From Podarcis muralis (Eukaryota), in NCBI RefSeq assembly GCF_964188315.1, contig NC_135667.1, positions 9,796,001-9,860,000 on the forward strand: a DNA stretch of 64,000 nucleotides. Direction: 5' to 3'. A program made the position numbers and the translations under genes. Positions 1-38,155 of this stretch are shown here, one piece after another (the stretch's first letter is position 1; each line of letters starts with the position of its first letter). Below the pieces are notes generated by a model that searched no databases, was not told the DNA's origin, and worked only from the letters and a program-made list of their open reading frames with translations.

Positions 1-160
1 AGCAAAGAGAGAAAAACAAAGGACAATAGTCCCACTTCATGGAACACAGTAACACAAACATCCTGTCACCGTCACTTCCCACTCTGTGGAGTCAAAACAT
101 AAACCGTCATGTGAAAGACAAAAATCCCATGACTGCAATCATGGAGCAGGAATTCTAACA
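1..160 (-). mobile_element. LTR, truncated by window edge (same family as 25378-25830)
   Basis: Near-identical to 25665-25830; ends ...aattctaaca, i.e. TGTTAG start on the minus strand. Confidence 0.85.
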
Positions 161-1274
161 TCCTCCAGATTTCATGCACTGATGTGAACAAACACAAAAG
201 GTATTTCAGTCAGGGGCTTTCAGGCAAGGGTCTCTCTCAGCCCTGTGAGGTGGGCTGGGAGGTAGAGGGGGAGATTTGGGAAGTGAGCTTAAAAGGAACT
301 CTGATGGGCAGGTCAAAGGGATAATGAAATGCCTGGGCTAGGTAGGTTGGGGAAAAGATCAGGAAACAAATTGGGTTTGGCTGGAAATAAATTTAATAGG
401 GATTAGGTCCAGATATTCTGAACCAAGCCAGGTATAACTGAGGGGAGTTGGACAATAATTGTTTCTAAACGTCTAGCCTATTTCATTATTATTTTTACCT
501 GAGGGCTCCCATTTTAACAGATGGCTCATGAACCTTCAGATTTTGAGGGAACCAGCGTGTTTTCATGTTTGAAGAGGCAGATCAATACCTAGGATAGGAA
601 GCTTCAAATTTCTACTCAGCCTTGAAGCCCATTGGGTGGCCTTAGGCCAATCAACCTAACCTACCTCACAGGCAGTACTATTTTGCTAGAAAAAGAGGTG
701 CTGGACCTCACCATGAATGCCTCCCTTGTCCTCTTAGAATGGCAATGGCACCCACCTGAGAGGTGATGGAACCAAGTTCCTGCGAGTTCAGGCTGAAAAA
801 AGCCCTACTCACCGGGTTCTTGTGAGGATAAAATGAGAGTGGAGAAGCACCATGTGTGTCATCTTGAGCTACTTGCAGGAGAGATGGGCTATAATTATAA
901 TGATTACTTATTTAATTAAACATTTTGCCTCATGTTTTCAGCCTTGGTAATCTCAGACCAAGCCATGTATAATCATTGCGAATGGACTTCCCATCAAAGG
1001 ACAAGTTGATTCAACTTCCTGATTGAGCTGCCTTTGCTAAGGGCAGAAATTGGTCTAAGCCAAGGGTTGGGAACCTCAGTTTTAAGGGGCAAATGCAGAC
1101 CTCCAGGCCCCTCTATCAAGTCCTCAACACTCTCACCATCCTCACATCCATTCCCTTGGTCACATCCCGCACTGCCCCTGCTTCACAATCACCCACGAGT
1201 AACTTTGACTGCCTGGGATGCAAGTTTGAGCTCTGATAATGCATCTTCCTTGCTTGGATGGAAGATGGACAGAA

Positions 1275-1295
1275 GTGTGTGTGTGTGTATGTGTG

Positions 1296-1357
<62 letters not shown>
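1275..1357. repeat. (GT)n(GA)n microsatellite
   Basis: Seen directly. Confidence 0.98.
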
Positions 1358-1361
<4 letters not shown>

Positions 1362-2819
1362 AGCCTACTATGCAAAGGTATAAATTATTTTAATTGTTCT
1401 ACCAACTTTTGTGTCTGGTCTCACCAGCTATAGGTATGTGACCTCAGAAAGTTGCTCAAAATGTATTGTGGCCCTCATACTTAAATAAGGCTGATGGCTC
1501 CTCTGGTCCAGCATCCTATTCTCACAGTGACCACTCAGATACCTCTGGAAAATCCGCAAACTGGATCCAAGCACAAGAGCATTCTCCCCCTCATGTGGTT
1601 CTCAGCCACTGGCTTTCAGAAGTCTTACTACCTCCAGCCATGTACCTTTAAGCCAGGACTGAGAAAGTACCTTGAGTTTAAAGAAACATATGCAATTTCA
1701 GACTTCTCCATTTGGACTAGTGCTTTCCACATTGAAGAAAAGTATATATGAATCTGAGCACAGTGCTGGATTAGAGGACACACAATTTCACAATATATTT
1801 TCACCACACCAAACACATCAATATGTGTATTTCGCATGCATAGTGTATCATTGTCACTACATTGTATCCAATCAAGTTGTCCCAATGGTGGAAGTACTTC
1901 TGCCTGCACAACAGGACTTCCTCTCTCTGCACCTGTCCAAATCAGATCCAGAGGGTTTGGGGAGCCCACAGAACAGATCTAGGAAAGCAGGAGGGTGCAC
2001 AGAGAAAGTAGACAAATCCTGGTGCAGAGATCATTGGATCCAACTCCAAACTGTGATATTATCTCTCCTCCCTTTCCTGTCTTGCGGAGGCTAACAACTA
2101 AAAATGTGTCAGTCCAGCAAAATTAAAACCACCATACGAAGGAAAATACAATGTAGCATACAATTTTGCCTCCAGCGATTTCTGTATCCTCCATTCTTTA
2201 AAAGATTTTTTTTCCACTTCCTTACATCACAAGCCAACAAGCTCTGCAAATTTTATGCCATGCATTTATCCATCTCTTTGCTACCATGAAGAATCCTACG
2301 GCATGCAATGTTACCCATTCGTGTCCTTGTGCAGCTTGCAGGAGAGCTATTCACTCTCTGAAGCTTAAAGAGGCAACCACTCATCATAGGCAATGGTGCA
2401 GCTTATTGTTCCTAAGACAACATTTAGCATGAGAGATATTAGCTCTCACTTTATTAGGATACACCAGAGACATGAGCTTTGATTCCCACCACAACAAACT
2501 AATCTGGAAGAATATTTGTGTATGGGGCTCAGCTATGGAACTGCTGCAGTTTCTTGTCCCCAAGCCAAGTTATTCGTGATACACCAAGAACCTTAGCTTT
2601 GCTTCCCAGAAGAGCAGAAAGAAAGAAAAATCTGGTGCAAGAGGCTCATATCATACTACCACAAACTAGTTTGTGAAGTTCACAGTCTGTATATGTAGCT
2701 TCTAAGTGGTTGGTTACTATTCTGGGATCAAGAGTTGTTATCACATTGCTCCTCCCTGCCTTCTTTCTTCTTTGAATTTTGATGTTGAATATTGGCTGGG
2801 ATATTCTATGTATCCCATA

Positions 2820-3170
2820 GGGACGCGGGTGGCGCTGTGGGTTAAACCACAGAGCCTAGGACTTGCCGATCAGAAGTTTGGTGGTTCGAATCCCCGCGAC
2901 GGGGTGAGCTCCCATTGCTCAGTCCCAGCTCCTGCCCACCTAGCAGTTCGAAAGCACGTCAAAGTGCAAGTAGATAAATAGGTAGCACTCCAGCAGGAAG
3001 GTAAACGGTGTTTCCGTGCGCTGCTGTGGTTCACCAGAAGCGGCTTAGTCATGCTGGCCTCATGACCTGGAATCTGTACGCCGGCTCCCTCGGCCAATAA
3101 AGCGAGATGAGCGCCGAAACCCCAGAGTTGGTCACGACTGGACCTAATGGTCAGGGGCCCCTTTACCTTT
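2820..3170 (+). mobile_element. Sauria SINE (POM type), full length
   Basis: GGGACGCGGGTGGCGCTGTGG head, B-box GGTTCGAATCCC, (ACCTTT)n tail. Confidence 0.95.
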
Positions 3171-3589
3171 TAATTCAGTTTTACTAGCAAACCGAAGGTT
3201 AACTACCACCTTTCCAGTTCCTGGGAGGAGTGCAGGGAGCCCTTGCAGTATATACTGTAGCCGACAGACTAACATATTGTGACACATAGTTTGGAAAGCA
3301 CTGTTCTAACCTTTCCCAGTCTTCCTCACAACAACTCTGTGGGGTGAGCTGGGCTGAGATGAACTGACTTTTCCAAGGAATCCAGTGAGCTTCATGGCTC
3401 AGAGGTGATTTGAACCCTGGACACTCTAACCACTATATCACACCTTAAACCATATCTGTAATTTACAGTCGAAGAATTATTCTGCATATCTGATGCCTGA
3501 CTGTGTTTGACAGCTGCCATGGAACAATAATTTACACTATACAATAATTACAATAATTTACAGCCAGTAAAGAGCTGGCAAGAGACCTT

Positions 3590-5557
3590 CATTCCTCAAT
3601 GATTGCTCCCCAGAAGTCATATCTTTAAAACAGTTTGATGAAATTTGGTTGCATTTGTTCAGATTACTGTTCTGGAAATGGTTTATCCATTAATTATGAA
3701 AAAATCTAAAATTTTAGTATTCAAAAGAAGCTTCTCCCAAGTTAAACGGGTACTGGATGGCCATAACCTTGAACTTCAGTTATCTAGAGCTCACATTCCA
3801 TCATACAAGATCTTGGAAGCACCACTGGCAAACCTCCCATCAAAAGGTGGAGATCACAAAGCTAGCCATACTCAGATTCTTTTTCACAAAGGGCGGCAAG
3901 TATGTTCCAGCAGCCTTAAGGGTTTTCAACGCAAAATCCATTTCCCAACTCCTGTACGCTGCAAATGTCTGGCATAATGGTGACCTGCCTAAGCTAGATG
4001 GCTTTCAGGCAAAATTTCTATGATCTCTGCTCCAGGTACCCAACTGTGTCCCCAACTTCATACTTCTGTTAGAAGCTGGTGAATGCCCAATTTCAACTAA
4101 AGCGTGGTGGGCTGCCCTAAAACATTGGCTCAGGATTTCAGTGTTTGAACTAGGGAAGGGTTTGTATCAACATCTGGCCAATGAGGAGTTTGTCAGCAAA
4201 TGGCAGAAAACCATGGCTAGAAAAGCCACCTCTATTGGTCTGCCCCCCCTCCCCCAACTTTATTACCTGGATCATGAAGGCACCCTAAAGACGTTAACGC
4301 AAAGATTATGGGATGCAACACACAGTGACTTGCGATCTCTTTTTTATTATTATTAATATTTTTATTAAGTACAAATTAGAAAACATACATATTCACAACA
4401 AAAGAAAATACAAAAGAAAAAGAAAATACATCTAACCAAGGAAAAAGAATTAGAGAATATTTTGTCTCTTTTCATATTTACAGTTATTTATACCTCTATA
4501 AAATGCTATTCACAATAAAGCAGTGAATGAAAGATATCAGAAAAAGAAAAAAAGAACAAAGAAAGAATAAAGAAGTAAAAGAAAAAGATCATAAGTGAAC
4601 ATTTTTAAAAGTAGATAAGTACTCACAATACATAGCCGTTTCCCATCTATATTTATATTCAATTGTATAATTTCATCTTGTCCGAATCTACCTTAAATAA
4701 ATTGTTGGGTTTTTTTTAAAAAAAAGACTTCCATCGCTTACCTCATGCGTTTTTAATAATCCGTTCGTCAGAACCTCTGTTCTTCATATTTTCCCTTTGG
4801 ATTTCCTTAATGTCTCACTTTGTATTTTTTATATTACGCACAAGATTATTCTAAACAAAACCAGATTTTTGTAGCTGAGCCCTGGTTTTGTAAATAATCA
4901 TTTAAGAACTCCCATTGCTTCATAACCATAGTTTTGGATTTTCTCCTTATTATATCCGTCAGTTTTGCTAATTCCAGGTACTCGCAAAGTTTCCCCAACC
5001 ATTCTCAATCACACGCAGTCTGTAGTCCACTGGCAGTAGGAGTACAATATGGGCATATCTTTAAGTTAACACCTCACATTAAAAACCTGACAGTAACAAA
5101 TTACCGAAGGTTATTCACCAAAGCCAGACTAAACGTTTTTCCTTCTGCAGTGTTGGATGGCAGGTTGAGAGGAGTTCCCTACCGGGACGGACTTTGCTAG
5201 TGTGCCCAAAACATCAATTCTATAAAACATATTTTGCTGCACTGTGTGAAATATGAGCAAGCCAGGGCTGAACAGATATTACCCTTGCTGGTACATTTCT
5301 CAGGAAAATCAGAGGCTCACTATGTCATGTTCCTATTGGAAAATCAGACAAGTGCTAGGACATTAGCAGTGGCAAAGTTTTTATCGGTGGTTGCAAGAAC
5401 TAATGATCCCTATCTTTAAGTCTGAACAAAATGCTTGTTTTACCTGGAGATAGGCTGTCTGAATTGTGCATTTCTTTGTAACGATTTGTTGAGTCTCTGG
5501 ACTGTAATAAAGACTGAGAATGACGATGACGACGACGACGACGACGATGATGATGAT
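3590..5557 (+). mobile_element. 5'-truncated non-LTR retrotransposon (RT C-terminus plus CCHC-like region; clade unassigned, RTE-X/L2-like), decayed
   Basis: Frameshifted ORF2 pieces YCSGNGLSINYEK.SKILVF, FSYLELTF...WKHH, ARLNVFPSAVLDGR, HILLHC; AATAAA then (GAC/GAT)n tail. Confidence 0.8.
4340..5003 (-). mobile_element. L1/Tx1-like 3' fragment nested antisense in the LINE above
   Basis: Minus strand reads EWLGKLCEYLELAKLTDIIRRKSKTMVMKQWEFLNDYL...*, then an AT-rich 3'UTR and poly(A). Confidence 0.8.
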
Positions 5558-6032
5558 CTTGCTTCCTCCCAGACCACATACACACATTCCTCCCTAACAT
5601 GGCCTTGAACATTGCTGTTTGACATCTGGCCCAGTAGTAAAGAACTCAGCCTCACTGATGCTGTGTGCAGAGGGTGACAATGAAACCCCTATAATAGTGT
5701 GTGTGTGTGTGTGTGTGTGTAAATATGTAATATACATTTCCCCACTCTCACACTCTCACAACCAGAATCAACTTCCGCAGTCACTTATGGACACACCGTT
5801 AAGACCATCTTCATGGAAGATAATCTTACTCAGCTACCAGTAATCACCAAAGAATGTACAACAGGTAGTCCGCTGATTTCAGAACTTTATGCCAAAAATT
5901 GATTTGGCATTTATTTGACATTTTTCACACACTGTATTCACCCATAGATGGTATCCCATCCTTGCAGTGTTATTGGGAGGCAAACCAAAGGCCTGATATT
6001 CATGTTCAAGCTGATGTCAGTCCTATTCCAAA

Positions 6033-6977
6033 TCACCTCGGGGACTTGCGAAGTCCAACACACTGTCTAAATCCAGCTCTCAAGGCATCCTGGACCTGCC
6101 TGTTCCTCAGGCAGTAAATGAATGGATTCAGCAGAGGAGATACAACAGTGTTCAGAAGGGCCACCCCTTTGCTGAAGTCTAACGTACCAGTGCCTTTTGG
6201 TTTTATGTACATGAAAATGCAGCTGCCATAAGTGAGGGAGATCACTATGATGTGAGAAGCACAAGTAGAGAATGCCTTCTGCCTCCCTGTGGTTGAAGGG
6301 ATGAGCATGATGGTTGAGACAATGCGTATATATGACACAATTGTTATGGCCAAGGTCCCAAGGACAGAGAGCAAAGCAATGAGGAAACTGAGGAGTTCAA
6401 ATAGAGACGTGTTTGCGCATGAAAGTTTCATCAGTGGCCCACTATCACAGAAAAAATGGTTGATGGTGTTTGGACCACAAAAGGGCATCTGAAAAAGGAC
6501 AACTATTGGAACCATAATGAGTGACAACCCCCCTAGCCAAGAGCAGAGTACCAGCAGTGAGCACAAGTGATCATTCATGATGGTTGGGTAGTGAAGAGGG
6601 TTGCAAATGGCCACATACCTGTCAATGGACATAACTGTCAGCAGAAGGAACTCTGTGGTACCCAGGACAAAATACAGAAAGCACTGTGTGAAGCAAGCAG
6701 GCAAAGAGATGGTCTTCTGTCCAATGGCCATGTTGATCAATGTTTTAGGAATGACAGAGGTGGTGAACCCAATCTCCAGGACAGCAAAGTGTCGAAGGAA
6801 GAAATACATTGGGGTGCTGAGCTGGGGACTCACCTGAGTGATTATAACAATCACAGCGTTTCCCGTTATTGTCAAAAGATACATGGGAAACAGAAGGGTG
6901 AAAAGCAAGATTTCAATTTGCCGGTTGTCTGTAAAGCCCCGAAGTATGAATTCTCTCACCATGGTGCTGTTCCTCAT
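6033..6977 (-). CDS. Olfactory receptor, class II, OR6C-like ('OR1'), 314 aa
   Basis: Intact 7TM ORF with [63 protein letters not shown]. True start is MRNSTM (N-glycosylation sequon); ttgtag acceptor at 6991-6992. Confidence 0.97.
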   Translation of the reverse strand: MRNSTMVREFILRGFTDNRQIEILLFTLLFPMYLLTITGNAVIVIITQVSPQLSTPMYFFLRHFAVLEIGFTTSVIPKTLINMAIGQKTISLPACFTQCFLYFVLGTTEFLLLTVMSIDRYVAICNPLHYPTIMNDHLCSLLVLCSWLGGLSLIMVPIVVLFQMPFCGPNTINHFFCDSGPLMKLSCANTSLFELLSFLIALLSVLGTLAITIVSYIRIVSTIMLIPSTTGRQKAFSTCASHIIVISLTYGSCIFMYIKPKGTGTLDFSKGVALLNTVVSPLLNPFIYCLRNRQVQDALRAGFRQCVGLRKSPR

Positions 6978-8111
6978 TTTGGGCACATTCCTACAACTAA
7001 AGTGAATAGAAATCATTCATTAGTATCAATGTTTTATAAACTATACTAAGCAAATGTTGCTTTTCCTTTTCTGGCAATCAAGTCCACAGTGCTGTGAATA
7101 ATAAGGCGTCTTGTATACTTCACAGTCAGGTCCCAAGTAGAAAATGGTACATTAAAAAGGAATTTTATTTAATATTCCATAAACAGGAACACAAACATAT
7201 TTGTGATGGAAATAAGGCAATAAATTCTTTTAATATAATTCTCTCATTTTGACACAGGATGTAATTTTATAGCACATCATTTGGAATGCAATTTTAAAGC
7301 ACAGTTAAAATAATGGAATAATTTAAAATAAAACATACAATATCTCATACAGTGATGTCTGTAGCCTCAGTGGTCTCTAGAAAGTTTCTTCTTCTTCTTT
7401 ACCACACAAAACTCTGCAATTTAGGACATGCATTTCTTTGCAAAATGGAAACACCCTATGAGAAGCGATGGTACCCAGTCTGTTCTTTAAGGGAGACAGA
7501 ACATGAGCTATTTGCTTCTTGGTTGCAACCTCTCCTAAGCAAGAATGCAGCTTCTTTTTCCTGAGGCAGCATTTAGCATGAGAGATATTAGTTTGTTTTC
7601 CCACAACGGGGACATGAGCTTTGCTTCCCAGAGGAGCAGAAAAAACTGCTGAACATTTGATGTAAGAGGCTACTGTCCTACTACTGCAAGCTTCGATGGA
7701 AGAGTCATGGTGCATAGGACTTCTACGTGGCTGGTTACTATCCTGGGGTCATGAGTTGAAACTATTGAGCTCCTTCCTCTCCCCTTCTTATATATCTACC
7801 CCCACCTTTCTTCCAAGGAACTAAAGGTGGTGCATATGGTTTTGTCTTCCTCACTTATTCATACAACAAGCCTGTCAGGTGAGGTAGGATGAAAGGCAGT
7901 GACTGGCCCACTAGCACCTGGTGAGTTTCATGGTCCCTCAACCCTGATTTCTGTCATTGAATAGCTTTTCACAACCAGCACAGAATAGTCAGTACTTGAC
8001 ATCATTAACTTGAAGGATTTCCTTGTAGGAAATCCTGTGTTACTGAAAGACAAGGTTTATCCAGTCGGCTGCAAGGTTTACATATTTTGATGTTTGAGCT
8101 GATGTTTGAGC

Positions 8112-8398
8112 TCAAGCACCTTGAGTTGCCACAAAACCCAACACGCTGTCCAAAGCCAGATTACAAGGCACCCTGTCTATTCCCCAGGCAGTAAACAAAT
8201 GGGTTCAGAAGGGAAGGCAAAACCATGTCAAGAAGAGAAACCCCCTTGGTAAATGCTAATTCACCTGCACCTTTGGGTTTTATATAATTGGAAATGCAAC
8301 TGCCGTGAGTGTTTGAGATCACGATGATGTGAGAAGCACAAGTGGAAAAAGTCTTCTGCCTCCTTGTGGTTGATGTGTATGATAGTGGAAATAATAAT
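8112..8398 (-). pseudogene. OR remnant (ICL3-TM6-TM7-C-terminus only)
   Basis: STTRRQKTFSTCASHIIVISNTHGSCISNYIKP...SLLNPFVYCLGNRQ with small indels. The 5' two thirds are absent; a Sauria SINE and a CR1 piece lie immediately upstream. Confidence 0.9.
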
Positions 8399-8406
8399 AA
8401 TGTATA

Positions 8407-8543
8407 GGTAAAGGTAAAGGACCCCTGACAGTTAAGTCCAGTCACAGACAATTCTGGGCTTGTGGCATTCATCTCGCTTTACAGGCTGAGGGAGCCAGCG
8501 TTTGTCCGTACACATTTTTCTGGATCATGTGGCCAGCATGACT
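8407..8543 (-). mobile_element. Sauria SINE, 3' part
   Basis: ggtaaaggtaaagg tail and ggccagcatgact core. Confidence 0.85.
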
Positions 8544-8559
8544 TCTGTTGCTGTAGCCT

Positions 8560-8680
8560 AGGATAGCGTTACCTTTTTTTTTGCTGCTGCATCACATTGT
8601 TGACTCATATTAAACTTGTGGTCTACTAAGATCCTTAGATCCTTTTCACATGTACTAATGGCAAGCCAGGTGTCCTCTTA
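8560..8680 (-). mobile_element. CR1 LINE fragment
   Basis: catcacattgttgactcatattaaacttgtggtctactaagatccttagatccttttcaca resembles squamate CR1 RT sequence. Further CR1 3' ends near 9629-9703, 19868-19960, 41160-41290, 43745-43870, 48917-48980, 51730-51960, 58200-58390. Confidence 0.65.
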
Positions 8681-9322
8681 TATAGCACCAGACTAAAACT
8701 CAGAAACACAACATAGAAAATCATCCTCACCCACCAAATATACATTCATACATTTGACAGGATGGACAAAATAACAGACATCCCAACCCTGGAGGTCCCT
8801 GCTAACGTCTCCCAAATGCCCCTGTCCTGCTCAGTTAGAATGGAAATGAGTGAAATTTAATTGTGGTTACAGATCAGAGTTACATACTCTGAGCCAAGGA
8901 CATCTGTAGTCTATGGAACTATGTCAACCACTGCTTTGAAATATCCAGCCCACTATTCGATTTGTGGGTTCTCATTTTGATCAATGGTTCATGAAGATTC
9001 ATATTTTTGGAGGACAGCCATGGGTTCATACTAAAATGGTTTCACTTGATCCTGGAAGATGAGGGTTCAAATTTCCAGTCAACCATGAAACCCATTGTGT
9101 GATATTGAGCCATTCATTGGCTCTCAGCCTAACCCTACCTCACAGGGTTGTTGTGATGGCAAAATGGGAGAGAGGAAAACCATGTGTGCCACCTTGGGCT
9201 CCCTGGAGGAAAAGTGAGATGTAAATATACAATGATTAATTACTTAAACCCAACCATTAGAATCTCAGATCAAAGCACATCTCATCATCAGTAGAGCATA
9301 AGACTCTTAAACTCAGAGTTGT

Positions 9323-9608
9323 GGAGAGCCAGCGTGGTGTAGTGGTTAAGAGCGGTGGTCACGTAATCTGGGGAACCGGGTTCACGTCTCCGCTCCTCCA
9401 CATGCAGCTGCTGGGTGACCTTGGGCTAGTCACACTTCTCTGAAGTCTCTCAGCCTCACTCCCCTCACAGAGTGTTTGTTGTGGGGGAGGAAGGGAAAGG
9501 AGAATGTTAGCCACTTTGAGACTCCTTAAAGGGAGTGAAAGGCGGGATATCAAATCCAAACTCCTCCTCCTCCTCCTCCTCTTCTTCTTCTTCTTCTTCT
9601 TCTTCTTC
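9323..9608 (+). mobile_element. Squam1-type tRNA-derived SINE
   Basis: A-box TGGTGTAGTGG, B-box-like GGTTCACGTCTCC, (CTC/CTT)n tail. Confidence 0.88.
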
Positions 9609-10340
9609 AAGCCCCACATTCGTCAAAAGATTCTTGCATTGCAGGGGGTTGGACTAGATGACCCTCATGGTCCCTTGAAGCTCTACAGTTCTATGATTTC
9701 TAAGGCGTTTGCCACTAAAGGGCAAGTTTATTCCTCAGCTCTGATCATCCTGCTTGATTTGCCTTTGCTAAGGGCTGGAATTGTGCAAGTCGGGAGCACT
9801 CAGATTTGAGGGTCAGATGTAGCCCTCCATGCCTCTCTAGCTGGTCCCCAGGGCTCTCCCCAGTCACAGATCTTTTCCTTGGGCCACATCCTGCTTCACA
9901 CATTTCATGAGTGTATCTGCCTACCTGGGAGGTATACTTGAACTCTGATAATGCCTCATGCTTGCCTGGATATGGATGTTTAAAGGTGTTTAGATGTGGG
10001 AGTAAGTGTAGAAACTAGTCTCCTGCACAAAGGTAACATTTTCATTGATTGCTCCACCTACCAACCATTCGGCCACACCAAACACTGGTAAGGTACCCAG
10101 AATGTAATGTGGACTCCATGCTTAAACGAATCTCCCAACCTCAGTCTAGGTTACTGAATAGCACCTGACATTTAACACTTGGTATCCTGTTTATGTATAG
10201 CTGAAACTCCTCTGTGATGTGAACATTCTATGCTCTTTGACAATAAATTTGATCTAATTTGTTTGATGTTTTCCTAACACAGTGTTGTCACAGTTAATAT
10301 CTGATTTTAAGGTTTCAGCTGATGGCAATCATCTTGGCTT

Positions 10341-11273
10341 CTAATGAAACCCAACACACTGTCTAAATCCAGCTTTCAGCGCATCCTGGACCTGTCTATT
10401 TCTCAGGCAGTAAATGAATGGATTCAGAAGAGGGGACACAATCGTGTTAAGAACAGCCACCCCTTTGCTGAAGTCCAAAGTACCAACACCTTTTGGTTTT
10501 ATGTAAATGAAAATGCAACTACCATAAGTGATGGAGACCACGGTGATGTGAGAAGCGCAGGTGGAGAAAGCTTTCTGCCTCCCAGTGGTCGAAGGGATGC
10601 GCAGGATCGTGAGGACAATGTTGACGTAGGAAACAATGTTTATGGTCAAGGTCCCAAGGAGACAGAGTGCAGCGATGAGAAGAAATCTGAGTTCCAGGAG
10701 GCTCGTGTTTGCACACGCAAGCTTCATCAGTGGTCCACTGTCACAGAAAAAATGATTGATGGTGTTTGGGCCACAATAGGGCATCTGAAACAGCACGGCT
10801 GTTGGGACCATAGTAAACAGCAACCCCCCAACCCAGGAGCAGACCACCAGCAGTTTGCAGACCCGAGCATTCATCATGGTGGAGTAGTGAAGGGGTTTGC
10901 ATATGGCCATGTACCTGTCAATGGACATGACTGCCAAAAGAAGGAACTCTGTGGCTCCAAACGCAAAGTACAAAAAGGTCTGTGTGAAGCAACCAGGTAG
11001 AGAGATGGTTTTCTGGCCAGCGGCCATGCTGGCCAATGTTTTAGGAATGATAGAGGTGGTGAATCCAATTTCCATGAAGGCAAAGTGTCGGAGGAAGAAA
11101 TACATTGGGGTGTTGAGCTGGTGATTCAGCCAAGTGATTATAACAATTGCAGCGTTCCCCGTTATTGTCAAAAGGTACGTGCTAAATATGAAGGTAAAAA
11201 GCAAGATTTCAACTCTTCGGTTGTCTGTAAAGCCCGAAAGTACGAATTCTCTCACCATGCTGTGGTTCCACAT
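10341..11273 (-). CDS. Olfactory receptor, OR6C-like ('OR2'), 310 aa
   Basis: Intact ORF starting MWNHSMVREF with [41 protein letters not shown]; ttgcag acceptor at 11287-11288. Confidence 0.97.
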   Translation of the reverse strand: MWNHSMVREFVLSGFTDNRRVEILLFTFIFSTYLLTITGNAAIVIITWLNHQLNTPMYFFLRHFAFMEIGFTTSIIPKTLASMAAGQKTISLPGCFTQTFLYFAFGATEFLLLAVMSIDRYMAICKPLHYSTMMNARVCKLLVVCSWVGGLLFTMVPTAVLFQMPYCGPNTINHFFCDSGPLMKLACANTSLLELRFLLIAALCLLGTLTINIVSYVNIVLTILRIPSTTGRQKAFSTCASHITVVSITYGSCIFIYIKPKGVGTLDFSKGVAVLNTIVSPLLNPFIYCLRNRQVQDALKAGFRQCVGFH

Positions 11274-12107
11274 TTTGGGCACATTCCTGCAACTAAAGTG
11301 AATAGAAATCAACCACTAGGAACAAAATTTTCAATTCCACTTTAAATATATTTTGCTACTCCATTTTGATTTAAAAAAAAAACAGGTCAAAACTGTTGTG
11401 AATAATAATATGCTTCACATACAGTCAGTTCCAGGTGGTGACTTCAAGAGAGAAGAATTGCAGTTCAGCTGTCTGTCTGTTAGCTCACCCCTGACAGAAG
11501 ATAATTTTGTGGTGATTGATAATAGAGAGATGGGCTGACCTTAAATCACTCAGGAAGAGGAGGGGGATTTGTGAGCAACCTCAAATGCTTTGATTGAGGC
11601 TTTTTATGCTGTCTGTGCCTGGTGGCTCAGACAGAAGTTAGAATGAGCTGGCAAGCTGAGGAGTCACAAAAATACCTTCTCTAGGTAGAAATACCCACGC
11701 CCTCCCTTCTTTAAACACTTCTGGGACAAGGAAAAGTATAACTTGGAGAGACCCCTCTACCTGCTAGTGAAAATTAACAGTCTGAAAATTTGTATGTACC
11801 ACATTCTGTCATTAAGAAGTACACAATGGAAAAGTGGACATTGAACTGTCTAAGGTAGAGCAAAATGCCTGATTTATGGTTGACAATAAGAATTATAAAC
11901 AGATGAGGGAATCCTCTGCGTGAAAAATCTCTAACCATTTTCCTGTTGCTTGCCACTAAAGAGATGAAAGAACTGAAAGTAAACCAACCATTACTCCAGC
12001 AATGGAAAATAATTTCTTGTGAGGTAAGATATGCTGGCTGTGATCATAAGGTGGAAATAGTGAGGCAGACTGAGTTGCTAATAATATTCAAACATCAAAA
12101 GCATAAA

Positions 12108-12468
12108 AAGGTAAAGGTAAAGGTATCCCTGCCCATACGGGCCAGTCTTGACAGACTCTAGGGTTGTGCGCTCATCTCACTCTAGAGGCCGGGAGCCAGC
12201 GCTGTCCGCAGACACTTCCGGGTCACGTGGCCAGCGTGATGAAGCTGCTCTGGTGAGCCAGAGCCGCACACGGAACGCCGTTTACCTTCCCGCCAGTAAG
12301 CGGTCCCTATTTATCTACTTGCACCCGGGAGTGCTTTCGAACTGCTAGGTTGGCAGGCGCTGGGACCGAACGACGGGAGCGCACCCCGCCGCGGGGATTC
12401 GAACTGCCGACCTTTCGATCAGCAAGCCCTAGGCACTGAGGCTTTTACCCACAGCGCCACCCGCGTCC
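12108..12468 (-). mobile_element. Sauria SINE, full length
   Basis: Complete element; about 11-bp TSD aaaagcataaa. Confidence 0.95.
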
Positions 12469-12985
12469 ATAAAAGCATAAAGAATGGCAAAGGTACCTTT
12501 AGATCGCCCAGTGATGTCCACCAAAGCAGCAGGTATGAATATTTCCTCTGGTTTTATTCCCAAAGCTTTTCTCATGAATGCGTATGTAGCCACAAGACAG
12601 CGGAGGTTTAGGACCAGAGTTTTCCTTCTTCTGGTTGGGCTACCTTCCCAGGTGGATGAGCCCCATCTGCCACTCAATTCCCTCTACAACACATGCAGTC
12701 ACGGCCTTCTACCAGAACCTGTCTTCACATGAAGGGGAAATTTCTAACTCCTTGAGGGTTGAAGCCCATTGGCTACCCTCACTTGTTTAGCCAGCCAGTA
12801 GAAGCCATTTCCCTTATAGGAGCCACAGGTGAGCAGAGGGCAGAGTGGGAATCAAAGGTGGATAAGCTTATAGGGACATATGCAAAAAAGAAAACAATAA
12901 AAAAATTAGGAGCTCAAGATATGGAATACAGGTTTCAAGCCATCTACATTCACACTCAAAAGTCAGTTCTGAGCTAAATACACAC

Positions 12986-13078
12986 CTCTTGCATTTCACA
13001 TTAACCGGAGGATATTCACATTACTGTATTTTCTTCCCACCCCCGGTTTCTGGAAGTTTTGCATCTACTTTATTCCTT
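12986..13078 (-). other. Predicted non-coding 5'UTR exon of OR2
   Basis: tttattccacag acceptor and CAAGAG|gtgtgt donor, both conserved in the OR3 paralog (19841-20389). Confidence 0.6.
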
Positions 13079-13719
13079 CTGTGGAATAAAAACAAGGTCT
13101 TAACTGCATAAGAAGAGCCCTGATGAATCAGGTCAGTGGCCCTCAATCGCAACTGGCAAAAATATTACTGCCTCCAACCATGCACATCTATTCCAGTAAA
13201 GTGTTTTAAGTTTATAGAAGCAGATCAGGGAGCTGCCCTATACAAGGTCAGACTTTTTCTCCATCTAGCCCAGTGCTTTGCAAGTTGAAGGGCAATGGCC
13301 CTCAAAGCTCTTATCTGGGGGGCTTTAACATCATCTGCTTCCTGATCCTTTTAATAGGAAGTGCTGACTATTGAATCTGGGGCTGCGGATGTAGGGAAAT
13401 TCTGCAATCTAATTCATGGGGAGTTATTGATCAGAGGACACACTTCTCTGAATTCTGCGATACATTTTCAGTTCAAAGCACAAGATGGATATTTTGCACA
13501 GGCAGAAGTACTTGTCTTAGAAGTATAACTTTTTGAACTCCGCTTTTAACTAAGAATTCTTATTCTCTCCCCTTCCTCTCTCATGAGCCCATGGAGGCTA
13601 GCAACTAAAAATGAAACATTCAAATAAAGTTAGAACCACAGTACAAAATACATTACAATACAGAATACAAATTTTCCGGTGAGTGGTGCCTATATCCTCC
13701 ATGCTTTCAAGAAACCCCC

Positions 13720-14071
13720 CCCCTCCCTTTTTTATTTTTTTTATTCAAAATTATAACAAGACATATTATCCAAAAACATATCATCCTTATTCCCTCCCCA
13801 TTTCCCCCCTCCCACACAAAACCCACCCACACCCACCCCACCCCCCGACTTCCCTCAGTTCCAGTCTTTGGTTTCTCTAATAATGATGTTTTCTGCATGT
13901 TACAATATAGTATAGATCCTCAAACTATTTAGCTGATTATTATCAATAAAAAAAAATTGTGAGTGTTTATTCAAAACCTGCCAAGGAGTCCAGTTCGCTT
14001 TGTTGCGTCTTCAGATACTTTGTAAAGGGTTCCCATTCATCCTTAAAGTCACAGTTATCCTTGTCCCATAG
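13720..14071 (-). mobile_element. L1-like 3' end
   Basis: Minus strand reads DKDNCDFKDEWEPFTKYLKTQQSELDSLAGFE*, then a G-rich 3'UTR and A tail. Confidence 0.8.
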
Positions 14072-14098
14072 CTTTTATGAAAATCCCCCCTTCCTTAC

Positions 14099-14600
14099 CT
14101 CATAAAACAAGCCCTGCAAATTTTATGTCATGCATTTCTCCACCTTCACTACAATGAAGAATCTTATGATATGCAATGGTACCCATTCTGTTCCTTAAGC
14201 AGATAGTGCAGATATGATGCTTGAGGGTGGCCTTTTCTAGGCAATGGTGATCCCCAAGCCAGCATTCACCACAAGATCGATTAGCTCTAATTTTGTCAGA
14301 ATACACCAAGGAGGACTTTAGCTTTGCTTCCCAGAGGAGCATTAAAAAAAATCTGATGCAAGAGGCTCAGATCACACGACCGCAAACTAGACCATAAAGG
14401 ACAAGGTATGCCTATGTGGCTACTATCTGGCTGGTTATTATTCTGTGATCTAGAGTTGAAATCACTTTGCTCCTTCTCACCGTCTCCTTTCTCCTCTGAG
14501 TTTCGATCTCGGATATTGGCTGGGATATCCCGTGAATATTTTGCCGAAGGTTCACTGAGCATTTGTTTATATATTTATTGCCTTTCTGCCTCACCTTTCT
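14099..14600 (-). promoter_or_regulatory. Predicted promoter and first exon block of OR2
   Basis: GAG|gtaagg donor at 14098; O/E-like site at 14328-39; block is paralogous and gene-oriented upstream of OR1, OR3, OR4, OR5, OR7 and the ghost locus. Confidence 0.5.
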
Positions 14601-14627
14601 TTCAAGGACCTCAAGATGGTGCACATG

Positions 14628-15451
14628 TGTCAGAGCTGCCCGAGGTCCCAGCTCACAAAGGACCAACGCCACTTCGTTGTTATATACAAAAGTCTTTATT
14701 GAAGTTCAGTTTCGCTTTCACAGCCGCGGCGCGCAGCTCTACGTCTCCAACTCTAGACCGCCGAAGCTCCGTCTGAATCTCCTCCCCCCAGACACCAGTT
14801 TAAGACTCTAGCCTTGCTCCACCTCTTCCTTTGCTCTTTCCTCCTCTGGTTCCGCCTGTCCGCTGGGGTCTTGCCCTTCCTAGACTCTTCTGACACTGAG
14901 TCCCCTGAGTCTTCCCCCTGCCTCCGGCGGGCTTTAGGACCTGGTTCCCAATCCAGGTTTTCTGCTGTCCCGCGCGCCTGTACATTTGAACTTGGCGCGC
15001 GTGCCTAGCTGGCCACCTTCCTCCTGACCGTTACACTGCTCCTGTCACTGCTTCCCCCTTCGGGGAGGCTAGCTGGACCTGACGTCCCCTCCGTTCCCCC
15101 ACTCTCCGATAGGGGCGTGGTCAGCCCTGACTCATCTTCTCTCCCTGCTGGAGGAGACGCTGGCCCTGACACATGGGACTCTTCCCCCCCACTGCGCTCT
15201 GGTGGGGAAGCTGGTCCTGATCTCCCACTGCTGCTTTGGGAGTCCCCGCTGGCCCCTTGCTTCGGGTGGTCCCCCCTGGGACCCCCCTTGCCCTGACCAT
15301 CGGCGCCCCCTTCTGGGAATCTTCTGATTCGCTGGAGAGGCTCATGGAATCTCTCGGGTCACTGTCATTCTCCCCTCCGCTGCCCTCAGATTCTTCCCCT
15401 TCGCTCTCCATTTCCTCTCTCCCCTGTGCCTCTGCTCCTGAGCCCCTGACA
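14628..15451 (-). mobile_element. Solo LTR (Ty3/Gypsy- or ERV-like), 824 bp
   Basis: TGTCAG...CTGACA ends, exact 5-bp TSD ACATG (14623-27, 15452-56), AATAAA on minus strand near 14697. Confidence 0.92.
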
Positions 15452-16026
15452 ACATGGTTCTAACCTTCCCAAATTGTCTTCCTAATAACCCTGTGAGGTG
15501 GAGCAGGCTGAGGTTAATTTTCTGTTAATTTTGAGTTTCATCGCTGTGAGATTTGAACCCTGAACTTTCAGGTCCTAGTCCAACAGTCTAAACATTCTAA
15601 CCACCACACCACGCCATAGGTGTGCTTTTTAGCCAATGAATTAGTCTGCATATCTGATAGCTGCCATTTGACGCTTGACTGCGTTTGACAGCCACCATGG
15701 AACACTAATTAATAATTTGTCTGAATATCAAAAAGGCTCAGTCTGAATTGTGCCAACTTGTGCTGTTAAAGGTTCAAAATGCTATACAGTCAGGTAGACC
15801 TGAATCTGTCTGTAGCTGTTTTATGCGTACCACCACCATCCCATTCAGAGTAGCCAAACTGCAACCACACTTTGAGGAATATGTAAGGATTTGATGCCCC
15901 ACACCCCTTTGTAAAATTGAGGGAGTTCTCAAGCAACTTTTCAATAGCAGAGCATCTGTTTCTGGATACAGAAAGTACCAGCTTCCCAATCTGGTAAGAT
16001 TGGTCCATCCAGCTCAGTATTCTATA

Positions 16027-16257
16027 CAGTGGTACCTTGGGTTACAGACGCTTCAGGTTACAGACGCTTCAAGTTACAGACTCCACTAACCCAGAAATAG
16101 TGCCTCGGGTTAAGAACTTTGCTTCAGGATGAGAACAAAAATCGCACGGAGGCAACGGGAGGCCCCATTAGCTAAAGTGGTACCTCAGATTAAGAACAGT
16201 TTCAGGTTAAGAACGGACCTCCAGAACGAATTAAGTTCTTAACCCGAGGTACCACTG
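16027..16257. mobile_element. Tigger/pogo-like MITE
   Basis: TA|CAGTGGTACC...GGTACCACTG|TA. Confidence 0.92.
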
Positions 16258-16573
16258 TACTGAGTAGCAATGAACCCTCTGGGATTTCAGGCAGGGGTTT
16301 CTCTTTCAGCCCAAACTGGAGATACCCGAGGTTGTAATTATGTATGAAACAACAGCAGCCAGAATCCTGTACACACAGAAATGGAAAGAAGAAGAACCAA
16401 CCAAGGAGGAATGGCTTCAAAAGTTAATGGACTGTGTGGAAATGGCAAGATTGACAGCAAAAATAAGAGATAAAAGAGCTGAACTGTTCACAGAAGGGTG
16501 GAGATGCTTTGGGGAGTATTTGAAGAACTGTTACAGTCAAATTAAAATGAAGGCAGGGTTTGAATTATGAGCA

Positions 16574-17375
16574 ACAGGTAAAAGAGGATTGGGAAATAAT
16601 CCATAACGAATTGGAAAAAAAAAATGTTTAAAAGTATTTTCCCCCAAAAAAACCCCAGAGTGCTGGGGATAATTCAGACAGAAATTCCCAAGTGTCAAAA
16701 AAAGTTTATTTATGTAGGCCATACTACAGGCCACGTTTTGTTAGGCCAAAAATGGAAAACAAGTGAGGTCCCAACTAAAGACGAATGGCAACTTAAACTG
16801 ATGGAATATGCGCAGCTTGTGGACCTAACATATAGAATAAGAGGACAAGAAGAACATTTGTTTAAAGAAGACTGGAAAATGTTTATTGAATATATGAGAG
16901 GAAATTGTGTACACTTGAAAACATGGGCAGCATTAAGATAAATCCAACAGTGTAAATACCATATTTTTTCGCTCTATAATATGCACCAGACCATAAGACA
17001 CACCTAGTTTTTGGAAGAGGAAAACAAGAAAAAGATATTCTGAATCTCAGAATCCAGAACAACAAGAGGGATCGCTGCACAGCAAAAGCAGCAATCCCTC
17101 TTGCTATTCTGGCTTCTGGGATAGCTGCGCAGCCTGCATTCGCTCCATAAGACGCACACACATTTCCCCTTACTTTTTAGGAGAGAAAAGGTGAGTCTTA
17201 TAGAGCAAAAAATGTGGTAAGTTTTGATGGATGTAATAATGGAATACTGAATGGTTTAGTTCATGTAAAATATGCAGGGATTTATGATATGCAAAATAAA
17301 CCATGGAACGAGAAGAAGAAAAGTCATGGATATTTTAAGGTTGTTTAAATGAATATTCTAAATTATAAAACAGAA

Positions 17376-18234: not shown

Positions 18235-19179
18235 CTATTCCCTTGTCCTAGAAAACCCAACAAGTGCCTTAAATCCAGCCTTCAGGGCATCCTGGAACTG
18301 TTTGTTCCTCAGGCAGTAAACAAAGGGATTCAGAAGAGGAGATACAACAGTGTTAAGAAGAGCCACCCCTTTGGTATATGCTAAATCACCTGTGCCTCTG
18401 GGTTTAATGTACATGACAATGCAGCTGCCGTAAGTGATTGAGATCACTATGATGTGAGAAGCACAAGTGGAAAAGGCCTTCTGCCTCCTTGTGGTTGATG
18501 GGATGCACAAAATGGTGAAAATAATAATGGTATATGAGACAATATTTATGGCCAAGGTGCCAAGGAGACAGAGTATAGCACTGAGGAGAAATATGAGTTC
18601 CAGGAGACTTGTGTCCCCGCATGCAAGTTTAATCAGTGGTTCAATGTCACAGAAAAAATGATCTATAGCATGTGGGCCACAAAAGGACAATTGAAATAAT
18701 GTAATTGCAGGAGCCATCATGAGCAAAAATCCTCCAGCCCAAGAGCAGAGCACCAGCAATGAGCAAGTTCGATGATTCATTATGGTTGAGTAGCGAAGAG
18801 GGTTGCAGATCGCCACATATCTGTCAATGGACATGACTGATAGCATAAGGAACTCTGTGGTTCCCACACTCAGGTATAAATACACCTGTAGGAAGCAACC
18901 AGGTAGAGAGATAGTCTGTTGGCCATTGGCCATATTGCCCAATGCTTTCGGAAGGACAGTGCTGGTAAATCCAATCTCCAAGACTGCAAAGTGTCTTAGG
19001 AAGAAGTACATCGGGATTTTGAGCTGTTGATTCACAAGTGTGATTGTGATAATCACAGTGTTCCACATTATTGTCAAAAAGTACATGCCAAGCAGGAGGG
19101 TAAAAAGGGAAATTTCAATTCGTCGGCTGTCTGTAAATCCCCAAAGTGTGAATTCTCTCACCATGGTGTTGTTCCTCAT
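18235..19179 (-). CDS. Olfactory receptor, OR6C-like ('OR3'), 314 aa
   Basis: Intact ORF starting MRNNTMVREF with all OR motifs; ttctag acceptor at 19193-19194. Confidence 0.97.
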   Translation of the reverse strand: MRNNTMVREFTLWGFTDSRRIEISLFTLLLGMYFLTIMWNTVIITITLVNQQLKIPMYFFLRHFAVLEIGFTSTVLPKALGNMANGQQTISLPGCFLQVYLYLSVGTTEFLMLSVMSIDRYVAICNPLRYSTIMNHRTCSLLVLCSWAGGFLLMMAPAITLFQLSFCGPHAIDHFFCDIEPLIKLACGDTSLLELIFLLSAILCLLGTLAINIVSYTIIIFTILCIPSTTRRQKAFSTCASHIIVISITYGSCIVMYIKPRGTGDLAYTKGVALLNTVVSPLLNPFVYCLRNKQFQDALKAGFKALVGFSRTRE

Positions 19180-19264
19180 TGTTGGCACATTCCTAGAAGC
19201 AAAATGAAGAGAAATGAAGAGTCTGGATTCAATGTCTGTAAGTCATTTTAAATTCAAGTAGCTG

Positions 19265-20310: not shown

Positions 20311-22769
20311 TCTAACCAACTGACCTAACTGAAATGTTCACATCCATTTTTTCCTGGTTTCCAAAAGTTTTGCATCTACATTCTTCTCTCTGCAAAATAA
20401 AAGCAAGGTCTTAAGAACATAGGAACATAAAACCATAACAATGTCAGAATAGGCTACTGAATCAGGGTGATATGTACAAATTCAACATGGAATGAATAAA
20501 GGCCCATCTATGCCTACCTGGGACCTTCTGCATGCAATATGTGCTCTGCCATGGAGCTATGACCTCTCAGGTCCAGTGAAGGAGAGACCTTCTCTTTCTT
20601 AAAAACCAAAGGACCATAACTATATTCTCAGCAATCTGCATTCCAGCAATCTCTGCAATGTTATTGCCTGGCTATCTCCATGGTACCCATTCAGGTCCTT
20701 GAGCAGATAGTGCAAAGGATATTCAGCCTTTACTTCTCAGACTCAACATCTTATAGGCAATGGTGCAGCTTCATGTCCCTAAGCAAGCATTTAGCGTAAC
20801 AGATATTAGCTCTTAGTTCATCATGATGCACTAGGGACCTTCGCTTTGGTCTCTGAAGGAGCAGAAAAGCTACTTAACATTTGATCTTTTTTATCTTATC
20901 TACAGCAGGGATGGGAAGCAAAATAAAGGGATTACCAGTCATCAGACTTAAAGTAGCAGAAGCCCCACCCGTTTTCCTTGAAATCTCACATTTTGATATA
21001 AATTTGATATCACTTGATATCAATTTCTCATAAATAAATTTTATTTTGTTTTTTGTTTGTTTTATGGTATTGTGTAAGCTATGCCTGCGAGTGGGGGTCT
21101 ACCATATATACATTACACATTTCGATGTATGGAGTCGTGCTGTGTAGTTCCTACCCCCCCCCCCCATGCAAAGGGTCCATTGAACATAGATTTGTTTGGG
21201 GGAGTGTGTCTTGTCCCTTTAAGGCCACTGCAGATACCTCAGATCTGGCATATAGACTTTTGTTTTAAATTTCCAATCACGTTATTTTCATGCCCCTGTC
21301 CACTACCCAACCAGTAGGAATCAGGGATGCAGATGACCCACCACAGTCACCCTGTAGGAGTAGGATCCATCACAGTGCTGGGGAGGTGGTGTCAGTTTTG
21401 TCTATGTATCCATTATGTTTGGTTCCCCACTCACCAACACCATGTGACAGCCCCCTCCCCAGCAAGATGCCAATGGCAGGTGGGCCAAATTCAAGTCCTC
21501 CAGCTGGCAAGAGAGTTCTCAGGTCTCTTGATTCCCTTGGGCTGCAATTGGTGATGGCAGGCCACAACACTACATCAACATCATCATCATTTATTATTTA
21601 TTATTTATGGGGTCATGCCCTGTATCTGGCTTTCCAAAATATGATAGTTCTATGAAGAACAATGCCAGATTAGGCCAAAGTCCCCTGTGGTCCAGTATCT
21701 TGTTCCCACAATGGCCAACCAGGTTCCTATGTGAAGCCCACACACACAATTGGTTTCAGCCTGACCCTATTTCATATGACGCACAATAAGTTTGTTGCAC
21801 CTTAGAGAAGCAACATTCATGTCTACTGTGTATTGTTAGCAAGCAAAGACTGGATATCTCTTGTGAGATGTGCTTAGGGACACAAACCAGCACTTAAGGA
21901 CATGAGCCAGGTTGCTTCGGTGTTCACTCCTGGCGCAAAGAGAAGGAGAAATGCAAAATATCATCGAGGTCACTAGTCTGTGAGCCAAGACAGCAAAGAC
22001 TCTTTGGCAAAGTGTTAAGGACGTGGCATGTTCAGAGGCCTCACAAAAAATAGGCTTAAGGAGAGGAATCTTTACAATTGTTCAATCTCCCTGGTTAGTG
22101 GAAGAATGTCAGGGTCATCACCATGGCCTGAAAGTTCTAGCAACCAACTCTGCATCTATACAAATGATAACACCACCCCCTTTTCTAAGTTGATGTTAAG
22201 AGGTGAGTACTTTGCTACAGACTTTGGTGATGAAATGAGGTGATGCAAAGTATTTGCTTTTGTAAAAGAAAATGATTTTGCATATGAGATGCTTATTCAC
22301 AGAATCATTTAGATTTCGCTATGGTTATTGTTATTGTTATTGTGATGCATCATATATGGAGATGTCTTTGAAGAGCATTTGGATGGGAACTGGCAAGGGC
22401 CTGCTTTGGTGGACATATCAGTGCAGACAATTCCCATGTCCCACCCACCCATCCAAGTTCAATGAAAATATGTTGCTTTGGTTCTGTTCCAGGGATGGTA
22501 AACTTGTGATTATTCACATGTCACTGGACTCCAACTCAGGGTTGATGGGGGTTTAAGTCCAATAATGTTTGGAAGGCCATCTCTGATCTAAATAGTCTGG
22601 GAGTAGGGTCTCTAAAGGACTGAAACAGATCTACTGGTCTGATCCAATTCTTCATGATATCAGTAACTGTCACACTCAGGCAATTGCAGAGAGTTAAAAT
22701 TGATTTTTTAAAGGCTAACACAGCTCTAAGGTTTGATTTCCCATTCCTTTTAGGGAAGTGCCAACAACG

Positions 22770-24910: not shown

Positions 24911-25377
24911 TGTGGAATCCCTTGCTTTTTATGCACAATGCATTGTGTCCAAGTTAACCTCACTCACTTTGAGTGGCCTTATGTAGCTCTGATACGCTTG
25001 CCTCTCGCAACTAAATACCTTAGCATACAATGCCTACAGACATTAAATGCTGTGAGTTTCCCTCAGATTTCTCTCTCTTCTTGGTCCCTTGCTCCATTAG
25101 TTCCCTACATCTTCCCAATTCAGCCTTCTCTTCAGTCACTAAACATTCCCTTGTGTTTCTCCTTCTCCATTCATTGCCCATTCAGTCCTTTCCTGCCTAT
25201 GGATAACCAGCTTCCCCACCCCCACCATCATTTTATGAACATTCAGATACAGCCAATCCATTTCAGTGTGCCCCAAAGCATAAGCCCTTCTCCTCATGAC
25301 ATTCACACCCACTGGTGACATTCATATCCTCCACCACCAAATTTGTCCCTCTGTGTCATATTGTGTGGGGTAGATTC

Positions 25378-29754: not shown

Positions 29755-29756
<2 letters not shown>

Positions 29757-29833
<77 letters not shown>
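29757..29833. repeat. (GT)n(GA)n microsatellite
   Basis: Seen directly. Confidence 0.98.
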
Positions 29834-37970: not shown

Positions 37971-38155
37971 CTCATCCAGCCAGTCCCTGACACATAGAGA
38001 CCTTGATTGGTTTCAGCAAGTCCATTCTTAAATATATGAGGAATTACTGTATTGATTTAATGGGAGTGAATCAACACTAAATGACTTCTGCTTTTGGAGA
38101 GGCCAGCCTTATTGACTCATTTTCCTTCACTTTGTTTTCAGAGAAGTGCCCAGAA

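Follow-up and report, generated by a model that had tools for sequence, protein, structure and literature searches.

In an ordinary vertebrate olfactory receptor (OR) gene an intronless coding exon follows one or more non-coding 5′ exons; OR genes of mammals usually carry introns in their 5′ untranslated region (UTR), and their promoters contain O/E and homeodomain sites (Young et al., 2011; PMC3247239). In human and in mouse, seven cases each are known of OR loci that use the 5′ UTR exon or exons of an OR upstream of them, and both species also have documented OR remnants inside the 3′ UTR of a neighboring gene (Barnes et al., 2020; PMC7055050). In the mouse, feedback requires a functional OR coding sequence, and a neuron switches away from an OR that is non-functional (PMC11166465); engineered mouse alleles from which the OR coding sequence was deleted are those of Serizawa (2003), Lewcock and Reed (2004) and Shykind (2004), as cited in PMC11166465. 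Here we analyze a stretch of 64,000 nucleotides from the wall lizard Podarcis muralis (the window; assembly GCA_964188315.1, contig NC_135667.1, positions 9,796,001 to 9,860,000), an OR cluster that has no runs of N and holds ten intact OR open reading frames (ORFs). At its left end lies a sequence homologous to the unit of one of these genes, OR2, in which the coding exon is missing and the block that would correspond to promoter and first exon (the ghost block) is retained. Comparison within and between species suggests that this ghost locus is a variant of the known 5′ UTR exon sharing between OR genes, in which the retained block would serve OR0, an intact receptor gene left of the window.

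The initial annotation of this DNA had described positions 500-3540 as collinear with the OR2 unit. In the self-comparison that it proposed, performed as a sensitive blastn search of 1-4500 against 8000-17000, the similarity extends over 375-3532 and 8834-15710 as one chain, and every anchor listed in that annotation falls inside one of the chain pairs. From left to right, the chain joins 375-733 to 8834-9201, 803-915 to 9133-9247, 972-1294 to 9693-10009 (66% identity, E 3e-31, among the strongest links) and 1355-1452 to 10010-10105 on one side of a single large break, and 1595-1737 to 13136-13290, 1762-1836 to 13422-13498, 2057-2202 to 13561-13710, 2214-2488 to 14087-14333 (E 7e-31), 2579-2813 to 14301-14537 (75.5% identity, E 3e-44) and 3294-3532 to 15448-15710 on the other. 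A 21-mer anchor at 2086-2106 matches 13593-13613 with one mismatch, where 0 matches are expected from shuffled sequences, and the segments 972-1294 and 1595-2202 have no other match anywhere in the window. The links at 803-915 and 3294-3532 are weak evidence for duplication, because they are members of a family of interspersed repeats found in either orientation (9062-9247, 7788-7934 and 15452-15584), and the weaker links at 1355-1452 and 1762-1836 gain their significance only through collinearity.

At the break, 143 bp of the ghost stretch stand against 3031 bp of the OR2 unit (10105-13136). This interval holds the OR2 ORF, in agreement with the annotated absence of about 3 kb that included the OR2 coding sequence; measured on the OR2 unit, what is missing extends from about 0.25-0.35 kb of 3′ flank through the coding exon and its acceptor to about 1.8 kb of proximal intron. 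To the left of the junction lies the homologue of the OR2 3′ flank (segment A) and to the right that of the distal part of the OR2 5′ intron (segment B; Table 1). With the window’s own OR2 unit the junction is resolved only to 1452-1595, as segment B then begins at 1595; with the OR2 unit of Lacerta agilis, to which segment B aligns from 1484 (74.5% identity), it narrows to 1452-1484, although part of this extension (1482-1561) also resembles 21669-21745 and 58213-58276 and is partly repetitive. Tested against the OR2 units of three species, homology flanks the junction on both sides. A tblastn search with six paralogous proteins detected no leftover coding sequence between OR1 and OR0 in the four lacertid species compared here, namely P. 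muralis, Podarcis raffonei, L. agilis and Zootoca vivipara (best E 0.16). The sequence 1452-1595 has no match in 8000-17000, which gives no sign of a direct repeat or shared transposable element (TE) at the ends of the missing OR2 segment that could have mediated a deletion. The structural part of the initial annotation is upheld: the locus is a paralogue of the OR2 unit that no longer has a coding exon and still retains its flanks, some of the intron and the putative promoter/first-exon block. A deletion is very probably the origin of this arrangement.

Comparison of the orthologous locus, also proposed in the initial annotation, revealed the same contiguous junction in P. raffonei (1725-1356, 95.7% identity, one gap) and in L. 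agilis (1806-316); the Z. vivipara match (1739-1340) covers the junction core and the right side, most of segment A being deleted there. Because these assemblies are independent, the chance that an assembly collapse at 1452-1595 hides a real coding exon is close to negligible. Such a collapse could be read into the DNA contigs of two studies aligned with 1365-7100, which are short and repeat-dominated and do not visibly bridge the junction, and into the read bin 1365-1556, which is repetitive with a depth of about 1500; against it, 1557-2324 has single-copy depth in both studies. The junction is old and is not an assembly artefact, and since its core is common to wall lizards, Lacerta and Zootoca, the coding exon was lost before these three genera diverged.

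The ghost block lies to the right of segment B. A block profile (nhmmer) recovers one copy upstream of each gene of the subfamily, in the orientation of that gene (Table 1), and the right part of the ghost stretch (about 2150-2813) is also homologous to sequence upstream of OR1 (7324-7789) and OR3 (20680-20867). Among the paralogous copies, that of OR2 is closest to the ghost block (74% identity), followed by OR1 (67%), with OR3 far behind (54%); two groups emerge, one of the ghost, OR1 and OR2 blocks (65-74%) and one of the OR3 and OR7 blocks (65% over 147 bp). P. raffonei, Lacerta and Zootoca all carry the ghost block. A GT donor (G/GTAAG or G/GTAAA, the slash marking the splice site) closes the block in the ghost, in OR1 and in OR2. 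The ghost donor, annotated earlier as GTAAG at 2225 and read here at 2220-2224, aligns with GTAAGG in OR2 and GTAAAG in OR1 and is unchanged in the four lacertid species. The best conserved parts of the aligned blocks are an O/E-like element (TCYTCTGGGAAG) and a CTAAT element. An internal insertion or duplication of about 120 bp is common to the window genome, P. raffonei and Lacerta; Zootoca has retained the greater part of it and lacks 40 bp of its first copy, and a deletion of 43 bp within the block is common to Lacerta and Zootoca. From position, orientation and motifs, the ghost block appears to represent a promoter together with a non-coding first exon. In the Lacerta OR1 block (merged loci L004/L005, about 23080) the donor position reads ATAAAG, against GTAAAG in both wall lizards, and the OR1 ORF there is intact; the first-exon donor may thus differ between species or paralogues.

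OR0 was found in the 4 kb to the left of the window, which belong to the contig region around OR1 (locus label L001). Its ORF begins 1.1 kb left of the window and 3.3 kb downstream of the ghost donor, and its ratio of nonsynonymous to synonymous substitution rates (dN/dS) of 0.27-0.39 among the window species, P. raffonei and Zootoca indicates purifying selection. The OR1, OR2 and OR3 acceptors align with a pyrimidine tract and TCTAG/G located 5 nt ahead of the OR0 ATG; as the OR0 coding exon opens with this conserved acceptor, an upstream exon is needed. In none of the four species does the profile detect a block in the interval from OR0 to the ghost block, and a search for an OR3/OR7-type or other block upstream of OR0 found none but the ghost block. 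Assigning the ghost block to OR0 results in one block per gene, with a donor-to-coding distance of 3.3 kb, like those of OR2 (2.8 kb) and OR7 (3 kb). The proximal intron of OR0 is homologous to that of OR3 (-669..-1104 with 19661-19190), and in a tree of coding sequences OR0 groups with OR7, OR3 and the relic described below (ultrafast bootstrap (UFBoot) 99-100), with OR1 and OR2 outside this clade. OR7, the sister gene of OR0, also has a long 5′ intron. The gene call available for this locus (L001 18093-20945) gives a 300-aa product from the OR0 start MRNSTM and runs past the end of the locus, covering more than 2.8 kb; it is probably a mis-spliced model, as it does not match the intact ORF of 317 aa.

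The other lacertids present this locus in different states. P. raffonei (L002/L003) is collinear at about 95% over the whole interval, including the junction, and its OR0 is intact. In Z. vivipara (L006-L008) the ghost block (L008 14785-15224) has the same donor and is followed by segment B and the junction; a deletion of 2.3 kb then joins the equivalent of window position ~1250 to ~-1075, 26 nt upstream of the OR0 acceptor AG (L008 16830-16900). Zootoca OR0 has an intact 317-aa ORF, only 1.7 kb from the ghost block. Since OR0 is intact despite this deletion, nothing in the interval ~1250..-1075 is needed, which argues that the OR0 promoter is not located there. L. agilis (L004/L005) has orthologues of OR3, OR2, the relic, OR1, the ghost block, segment B, the junction and segment A. 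Its OR0 (merged 30150-30601) is a pseudogene, frameshifted near codon 40 and cut short after about codon 141 by a deletion of the equivalent of -1529..-2263, which took the 3′ ~530 bp and about 200 bp of flank. Judged from its coding sequence, OR0 is a working gene in two lineages; only in L. agilis is the ghost block truly without a coding sequence, and there it amounts to an ordinary OR pseudogene that has kept its promoter. The Zootoca breakpoint adjoins a (TC)n microsatellite, and the counterpart of the (GA)n of segment A lies a few tens of bp away; a Zootoca-specific insertion of 732 bp is found at L008 15733-16465.

Taken together, these observations are best explained, with a probability of roughly 0.58 for the explanation as a whole, by the ghost block being a hand-me-down promoter that now most likely drives OR0. 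The stretch would be what is left, at the 5′ end and in the 3′ flank, of an old OR2-like (‘M-type’) receptor gene that lost its coding exon to a deletion of about 3.0-3.3 kb before wall lizards, Lacerta and Zootoca diverged. Transcription would start in the ghost block on the minus strand, and the non-coding first exon would be spliced from the donor (2224-2220) to the OR0 acceptor, so that a 3.3-kb intron in the OR0 transcript would hold segments B and A and a young TE; an OR3/OR7-type (‘L-type’) receptor would then be expressed from the OR2-type promoter of its deleted upstream neighbor. Present use of the ghost block by OR0 is, on its own, probable. The mismatch between an OR2-like block and an OR0 whose coding sequence and proximal intron are OR3/OR7-like indicates that the promoter was probably inherited from the deleted paralogue, and for the same reason a lost OR2-like coding exon is favored over a long 5′ region native to OR0. 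Of the two functional readings in the initial annotation, splicing of the orphan exon into the next OR to the left is thus the one we favor, given that OR0 lies on the same strand, that the ghost block is the sole block upstream of it and that the Zootoca deletion leaves it intact; a natural decoy locus is not favored, as an intact and constrained OR0 follows.

Several points weigh against this explanation. Transcription from the ghost block and its splice to OR0 are deduced from comparative anatomy. Of the block’s elements, TCYTCTGGGAAGCAAAGC and GCTAATATC (O/E-like and CTAAT) were spotted by eye in alignments only. Where the donor GT aligns, Lacerta OR1 has AT and OR3 lacks the dinucleotide, and this variability among paralogues makes the donor assignment insecure for the family as a whole. 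The ghost block looks equally well kept in L. agilis, where OR0 is dead. Between species it is 93.6% identical, compared with 92-94% for neutral flanks; the OR1 and OR2 blocks reach 91-93%, so that this test is powerless, and orthologous identity is flat at 91-94% over blocks, introns and flanks, the blocks of intact genes included, which speaks neither for nor against function. Finally, the relic downstream of OR2 groups with OR3 and is not the sister of OR0, and a simple duplication of the unit would therefore need later OR3/OR7 copies or gene conversion.

Some of these points would suit a ghost block that is only a decaying, functionless relic, with OR0 using another, unrecognised promoter or first exon. 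A dead block should be conserved no better than its flanks, should persist in Lacerta regardless of the broken OR0 and should accumulate small deletions such as those of 43 bp in Lacerta and Zootoca and 40 bp in Zootoca, all of which is observed. The blocks of intact genes, however, likewise show no excess conservation, and OR0, which is under purifying selection, needs an upstream exon for which none of the four species offers another block-like sequence. Moreover, the Zootoca deletion removed nearly all of the alternative space between block and coding exon and OR0 survived it. We therefore regard a merely dead relic as unlikely. The opposite proposal is that the block was selectively kept as a natural decoy, a promoter without coding sequence that neurons choose and, failing to trigger receptor feedback, abandon for another receptor. 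It draws on the need for a functional coding sequence in mouse OR feedback and the switching from non-functional ORs (PMC11166465), on the persistence of the block since before the split of the three genera and on the L. agilis locus, where the block is not followed by an intact coding sequence. The window species, P. raffonei and Zootoca do have an intact OR downstream on the same strand, though; the block itself carries no sign of selection, its persistence requires none at a neutral divergence of 6-8%, and promoter-bearing pseudogenes are commonplace in OR clusters (PMC7055050). A decoy is accordingly highly improbable.

The arrangement could also be original rather than derived: the block, segment B and segment A would be the native 5′ region of OR0, nothing would have been lost, and the 3 kb with the OR2 exon would have been inserted into the intron of the relic gene. 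In both units an L-type coding exon is indeed followed, from left to right, by A, B and the block, and none of the blocks lies between the left exon and A; capture of the promoter by the inserted exon would explain why the relic died; the count of one block per gene fits as well. This proposal nevertheless leaves an M-type block in front of an L-type coding sequence, an odd state given that the block groups are only 54% identical, and the OR2-specific 3 kb shares no more than the coding exon and about 100 bp on either side with other units, so that no donor is visible. Deletion is also the simpler mutation, and we consider insertion quite improbable.

How an OR2-type block came to stand before OR0 may be reflected in the OR2 unit itself. 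Downstream of OR2 lies the relic, a 3′ fragment of an OR3/OR0-type coding exon (Table 1), whose orthologues in Lacerta (merged L005+L004 21602-22008) and Zootoca are fragments as well and which groups with OR3 inside the OR0/OR7/OR3 clade (UFBoot 99). The OR2 unit is the mirror image of the ghost: OR2 was kept, and the OR3/OR0-type gene downstream of it is dead. The simplest history, if still a rather doubtful one, would start from a two-receptor unit in the order block, OR2-type exon, segment A, OR0-type exon, whose receptors would have shared one promoter and 5′ exon and which would have been duplicated, with reciprocal loss of coding exons. One copy would have deleted the upstream exon and kept OR0, and the other would have kept OR2 while its downstream exon decayed to the relic; the duplication of the unit is placed at a paralogue divergence of dS ~0.5. 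The sharing of 5′ exons and the 3′ UTR remnants in human and mouse (PMC7055050) provide a precedent for such a unit. A piece of a short interspersed element (SINE) at 8379-8541 directly adjoins the relic.

Table 1. Features of the ghost locus and of its paralogues in the window; negative positions lie to the left of the window.
Feature	Position	Strand	Description
Ghost block	2212-2775	-	putative promoter/first-exon block of lost OR2-like gene; nhmmer 2531-2212 (E 4e-75), 2775-2542 (E 3e-57)
Putative first-exon donor	2220-2224	-	GAT/GTAAGG; cttac on + strand
Internal insertion/duplication, ~120 bp	2452-2608	-	repeats O/E-like GGGAA(G/T)CAAAGCT; from alignments
Segment B	1484-2202	-	homologue of distal part of OR2 5′ intron (13136-13710)
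Junction	1452-1484	.	3.0-3.3 kb missing relative to OR2 unit
Segment A	375-1452	-	homologue of OR2 3′ flank (8834-10105); now inside presumed OR0 intron
TE insertion, right end	1-163	.	450 bp in all, window -287..163, in presumed OR0 intron
OR0 ORF	window -1106..-2059 (L001 18084-19037)	-	intact, 317 aa, same strand as ghost block
OR1 ORF	6033-7016	-	intact ORF
OR1 block	7380-7798		nhmmer profile
Relic 3′ fragment of OR3/OR0-type coding exon	8084-8404	-	between OR1 and OR2, downstream of OR2; 73% identical to OR2 10304-10592
OR2 ORF	10341-11312	-	comparator; counterpart missing from ghost
OR2 block	14081-14499	-	nhmmer profile; comparator; donor 14092-14096
OR3 ORF	18235-19188	-	intact ORF
OR3 block	20584-20959		nhmmer profile
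OR4 block	21790-21894		nhmmer profile
OR5 block	26581-26691		nhmmer profile
OR7 block	35097-35305	+	nhmmer profile; 3 kb upstream of OR7 coding exon
OR7 coding exon	38081-39103	+	its block at 35097-35305
tRNA-like SINE	2803-3172; also 12113-12471(-), 51019-51379, 56645-56985(-), 57768-58134		extremely high copy number

A number of younger or repetitive elements are superimposed on this arrangement. The 450-bp TE insertion that reaches into the window from the left is young (88-92% identical to 25376-25829) and absent from the homologous site in P. raffonei and Lacerta, and thus specific to the window genome. The SINE at 2803-3172 is unrelated to the chain; its summed contig depth exceeds 1 million and both of its strands are read in RNA run X23. 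The copy at 12113-12471, in the OR2 intron, is not found at that site in Lacerta. Segment A contains a long (GA)n microsatellite (1298-1359), further copies of which occur at 29754-29833 and, inverted, at window -878..-840. In the OR2 unit, about 380 bp of C-rich, low-complexity sequence (13710-14087) separate the homologue of segment B from the OR2 donor; the ghost, which passes from 2202 to 2214, does not have it.

In the coding-sequence tree the OR genes of the window genome group with their P. raffonei orthologues. The dN/dS of OR3 is rather high (0.48-0.62 among the window species, Lacerta and Zootoca), and that of OR1 and OR2 is 0.09-0.21; the annotated start of OR1 is an internal Met. 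RNA run X23 has zero reads on the OR1 coding exon and reads on SINE and other repeats only; as it has no OR1 coding-exon reads, it does not derive from olfactory tissue and is uninformative on OR expression. The RNA-like contigs of X15 likewise cover SINE and other repeats only and leave the OR1 coding exon uncovered, and are equally uninformative on expression.

The favored arrangement, with OR0 expressed from the ghost block, resembles 5′ UTR exon sharing in human and mouse in that a downstream receptor on the same strand would depend on the promoter and first exon of an upstream OR, with a splice that skips the position of the upstream gene. It differs from those cases in that the upstream coding exon of the lizards has been deleted outright, which would leave the downstream gene as the sole user, and in that the junction between the exons is proposed from comparative anatomy. 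As a gene, OR0 would be much like an ordinary vertebrate OR, with a block 3.3 kb upstream on the same strand, a GT donor, an acceptor just before the ATG and, as possible promoter sites, conserved O/E-like and CTAAT elements; unlike an ordinary OR gene, its block has its nearest relative (OR2) in another lineage than its OR3/OR7-type coding exon, and its intron carries the 3′ flank of a vanished gene. The ghost is also akin to the remnants left by birth and death of OR genes, being a decayed tandem duplicate in an OR cluster, and the relic at 8084-8404 is exactly such a remnant. Whereas OR pseudogenes usually keep a damaged coding exon, that of the ghost is cleanly gone and the regulatory end has been kept. 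In this respect it parallels the engineered mouse alleles, where a promoter is retained and its own coding sequence removed. The wall lizard differs from these alleles because an intact receptor follows, and choice of the promoter would probably yield a working receptor; the empty state of the mouse alleles is found in L. agilis only, where it is equivalent to any expressed pseudogene.

For annotation, this locus carries two lessons. An approach limited to coding sequences overlooks the relic and gives OR0 a wrong 5′ end, and a view confined to a fixed window can make the 5′ end of an ordinary gene look like a ‘ghost’. If RNA confirms the proposed transcript, the locus would be a natural promoter swap, in which a receptor of one subfamily is expressed from the promoter of a vanished neighbor of another. 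If the two-receptor ancestor is also true, the receptor would have permanently inherited the promoter of the other lineage, together with its choice probability and zone, and the swap would have been fixed for tens of millions of years. The lacertids provide three natural allelic states of this locus, with a 3.3-kb intron in wall lizards, a distance of 1.7 kb after the second deletion in Zootoca and a dead receptor in L. agilis; such an allelic series could separate the share of the promoter from that of the coding sequence in receptor choice, without transgenics.

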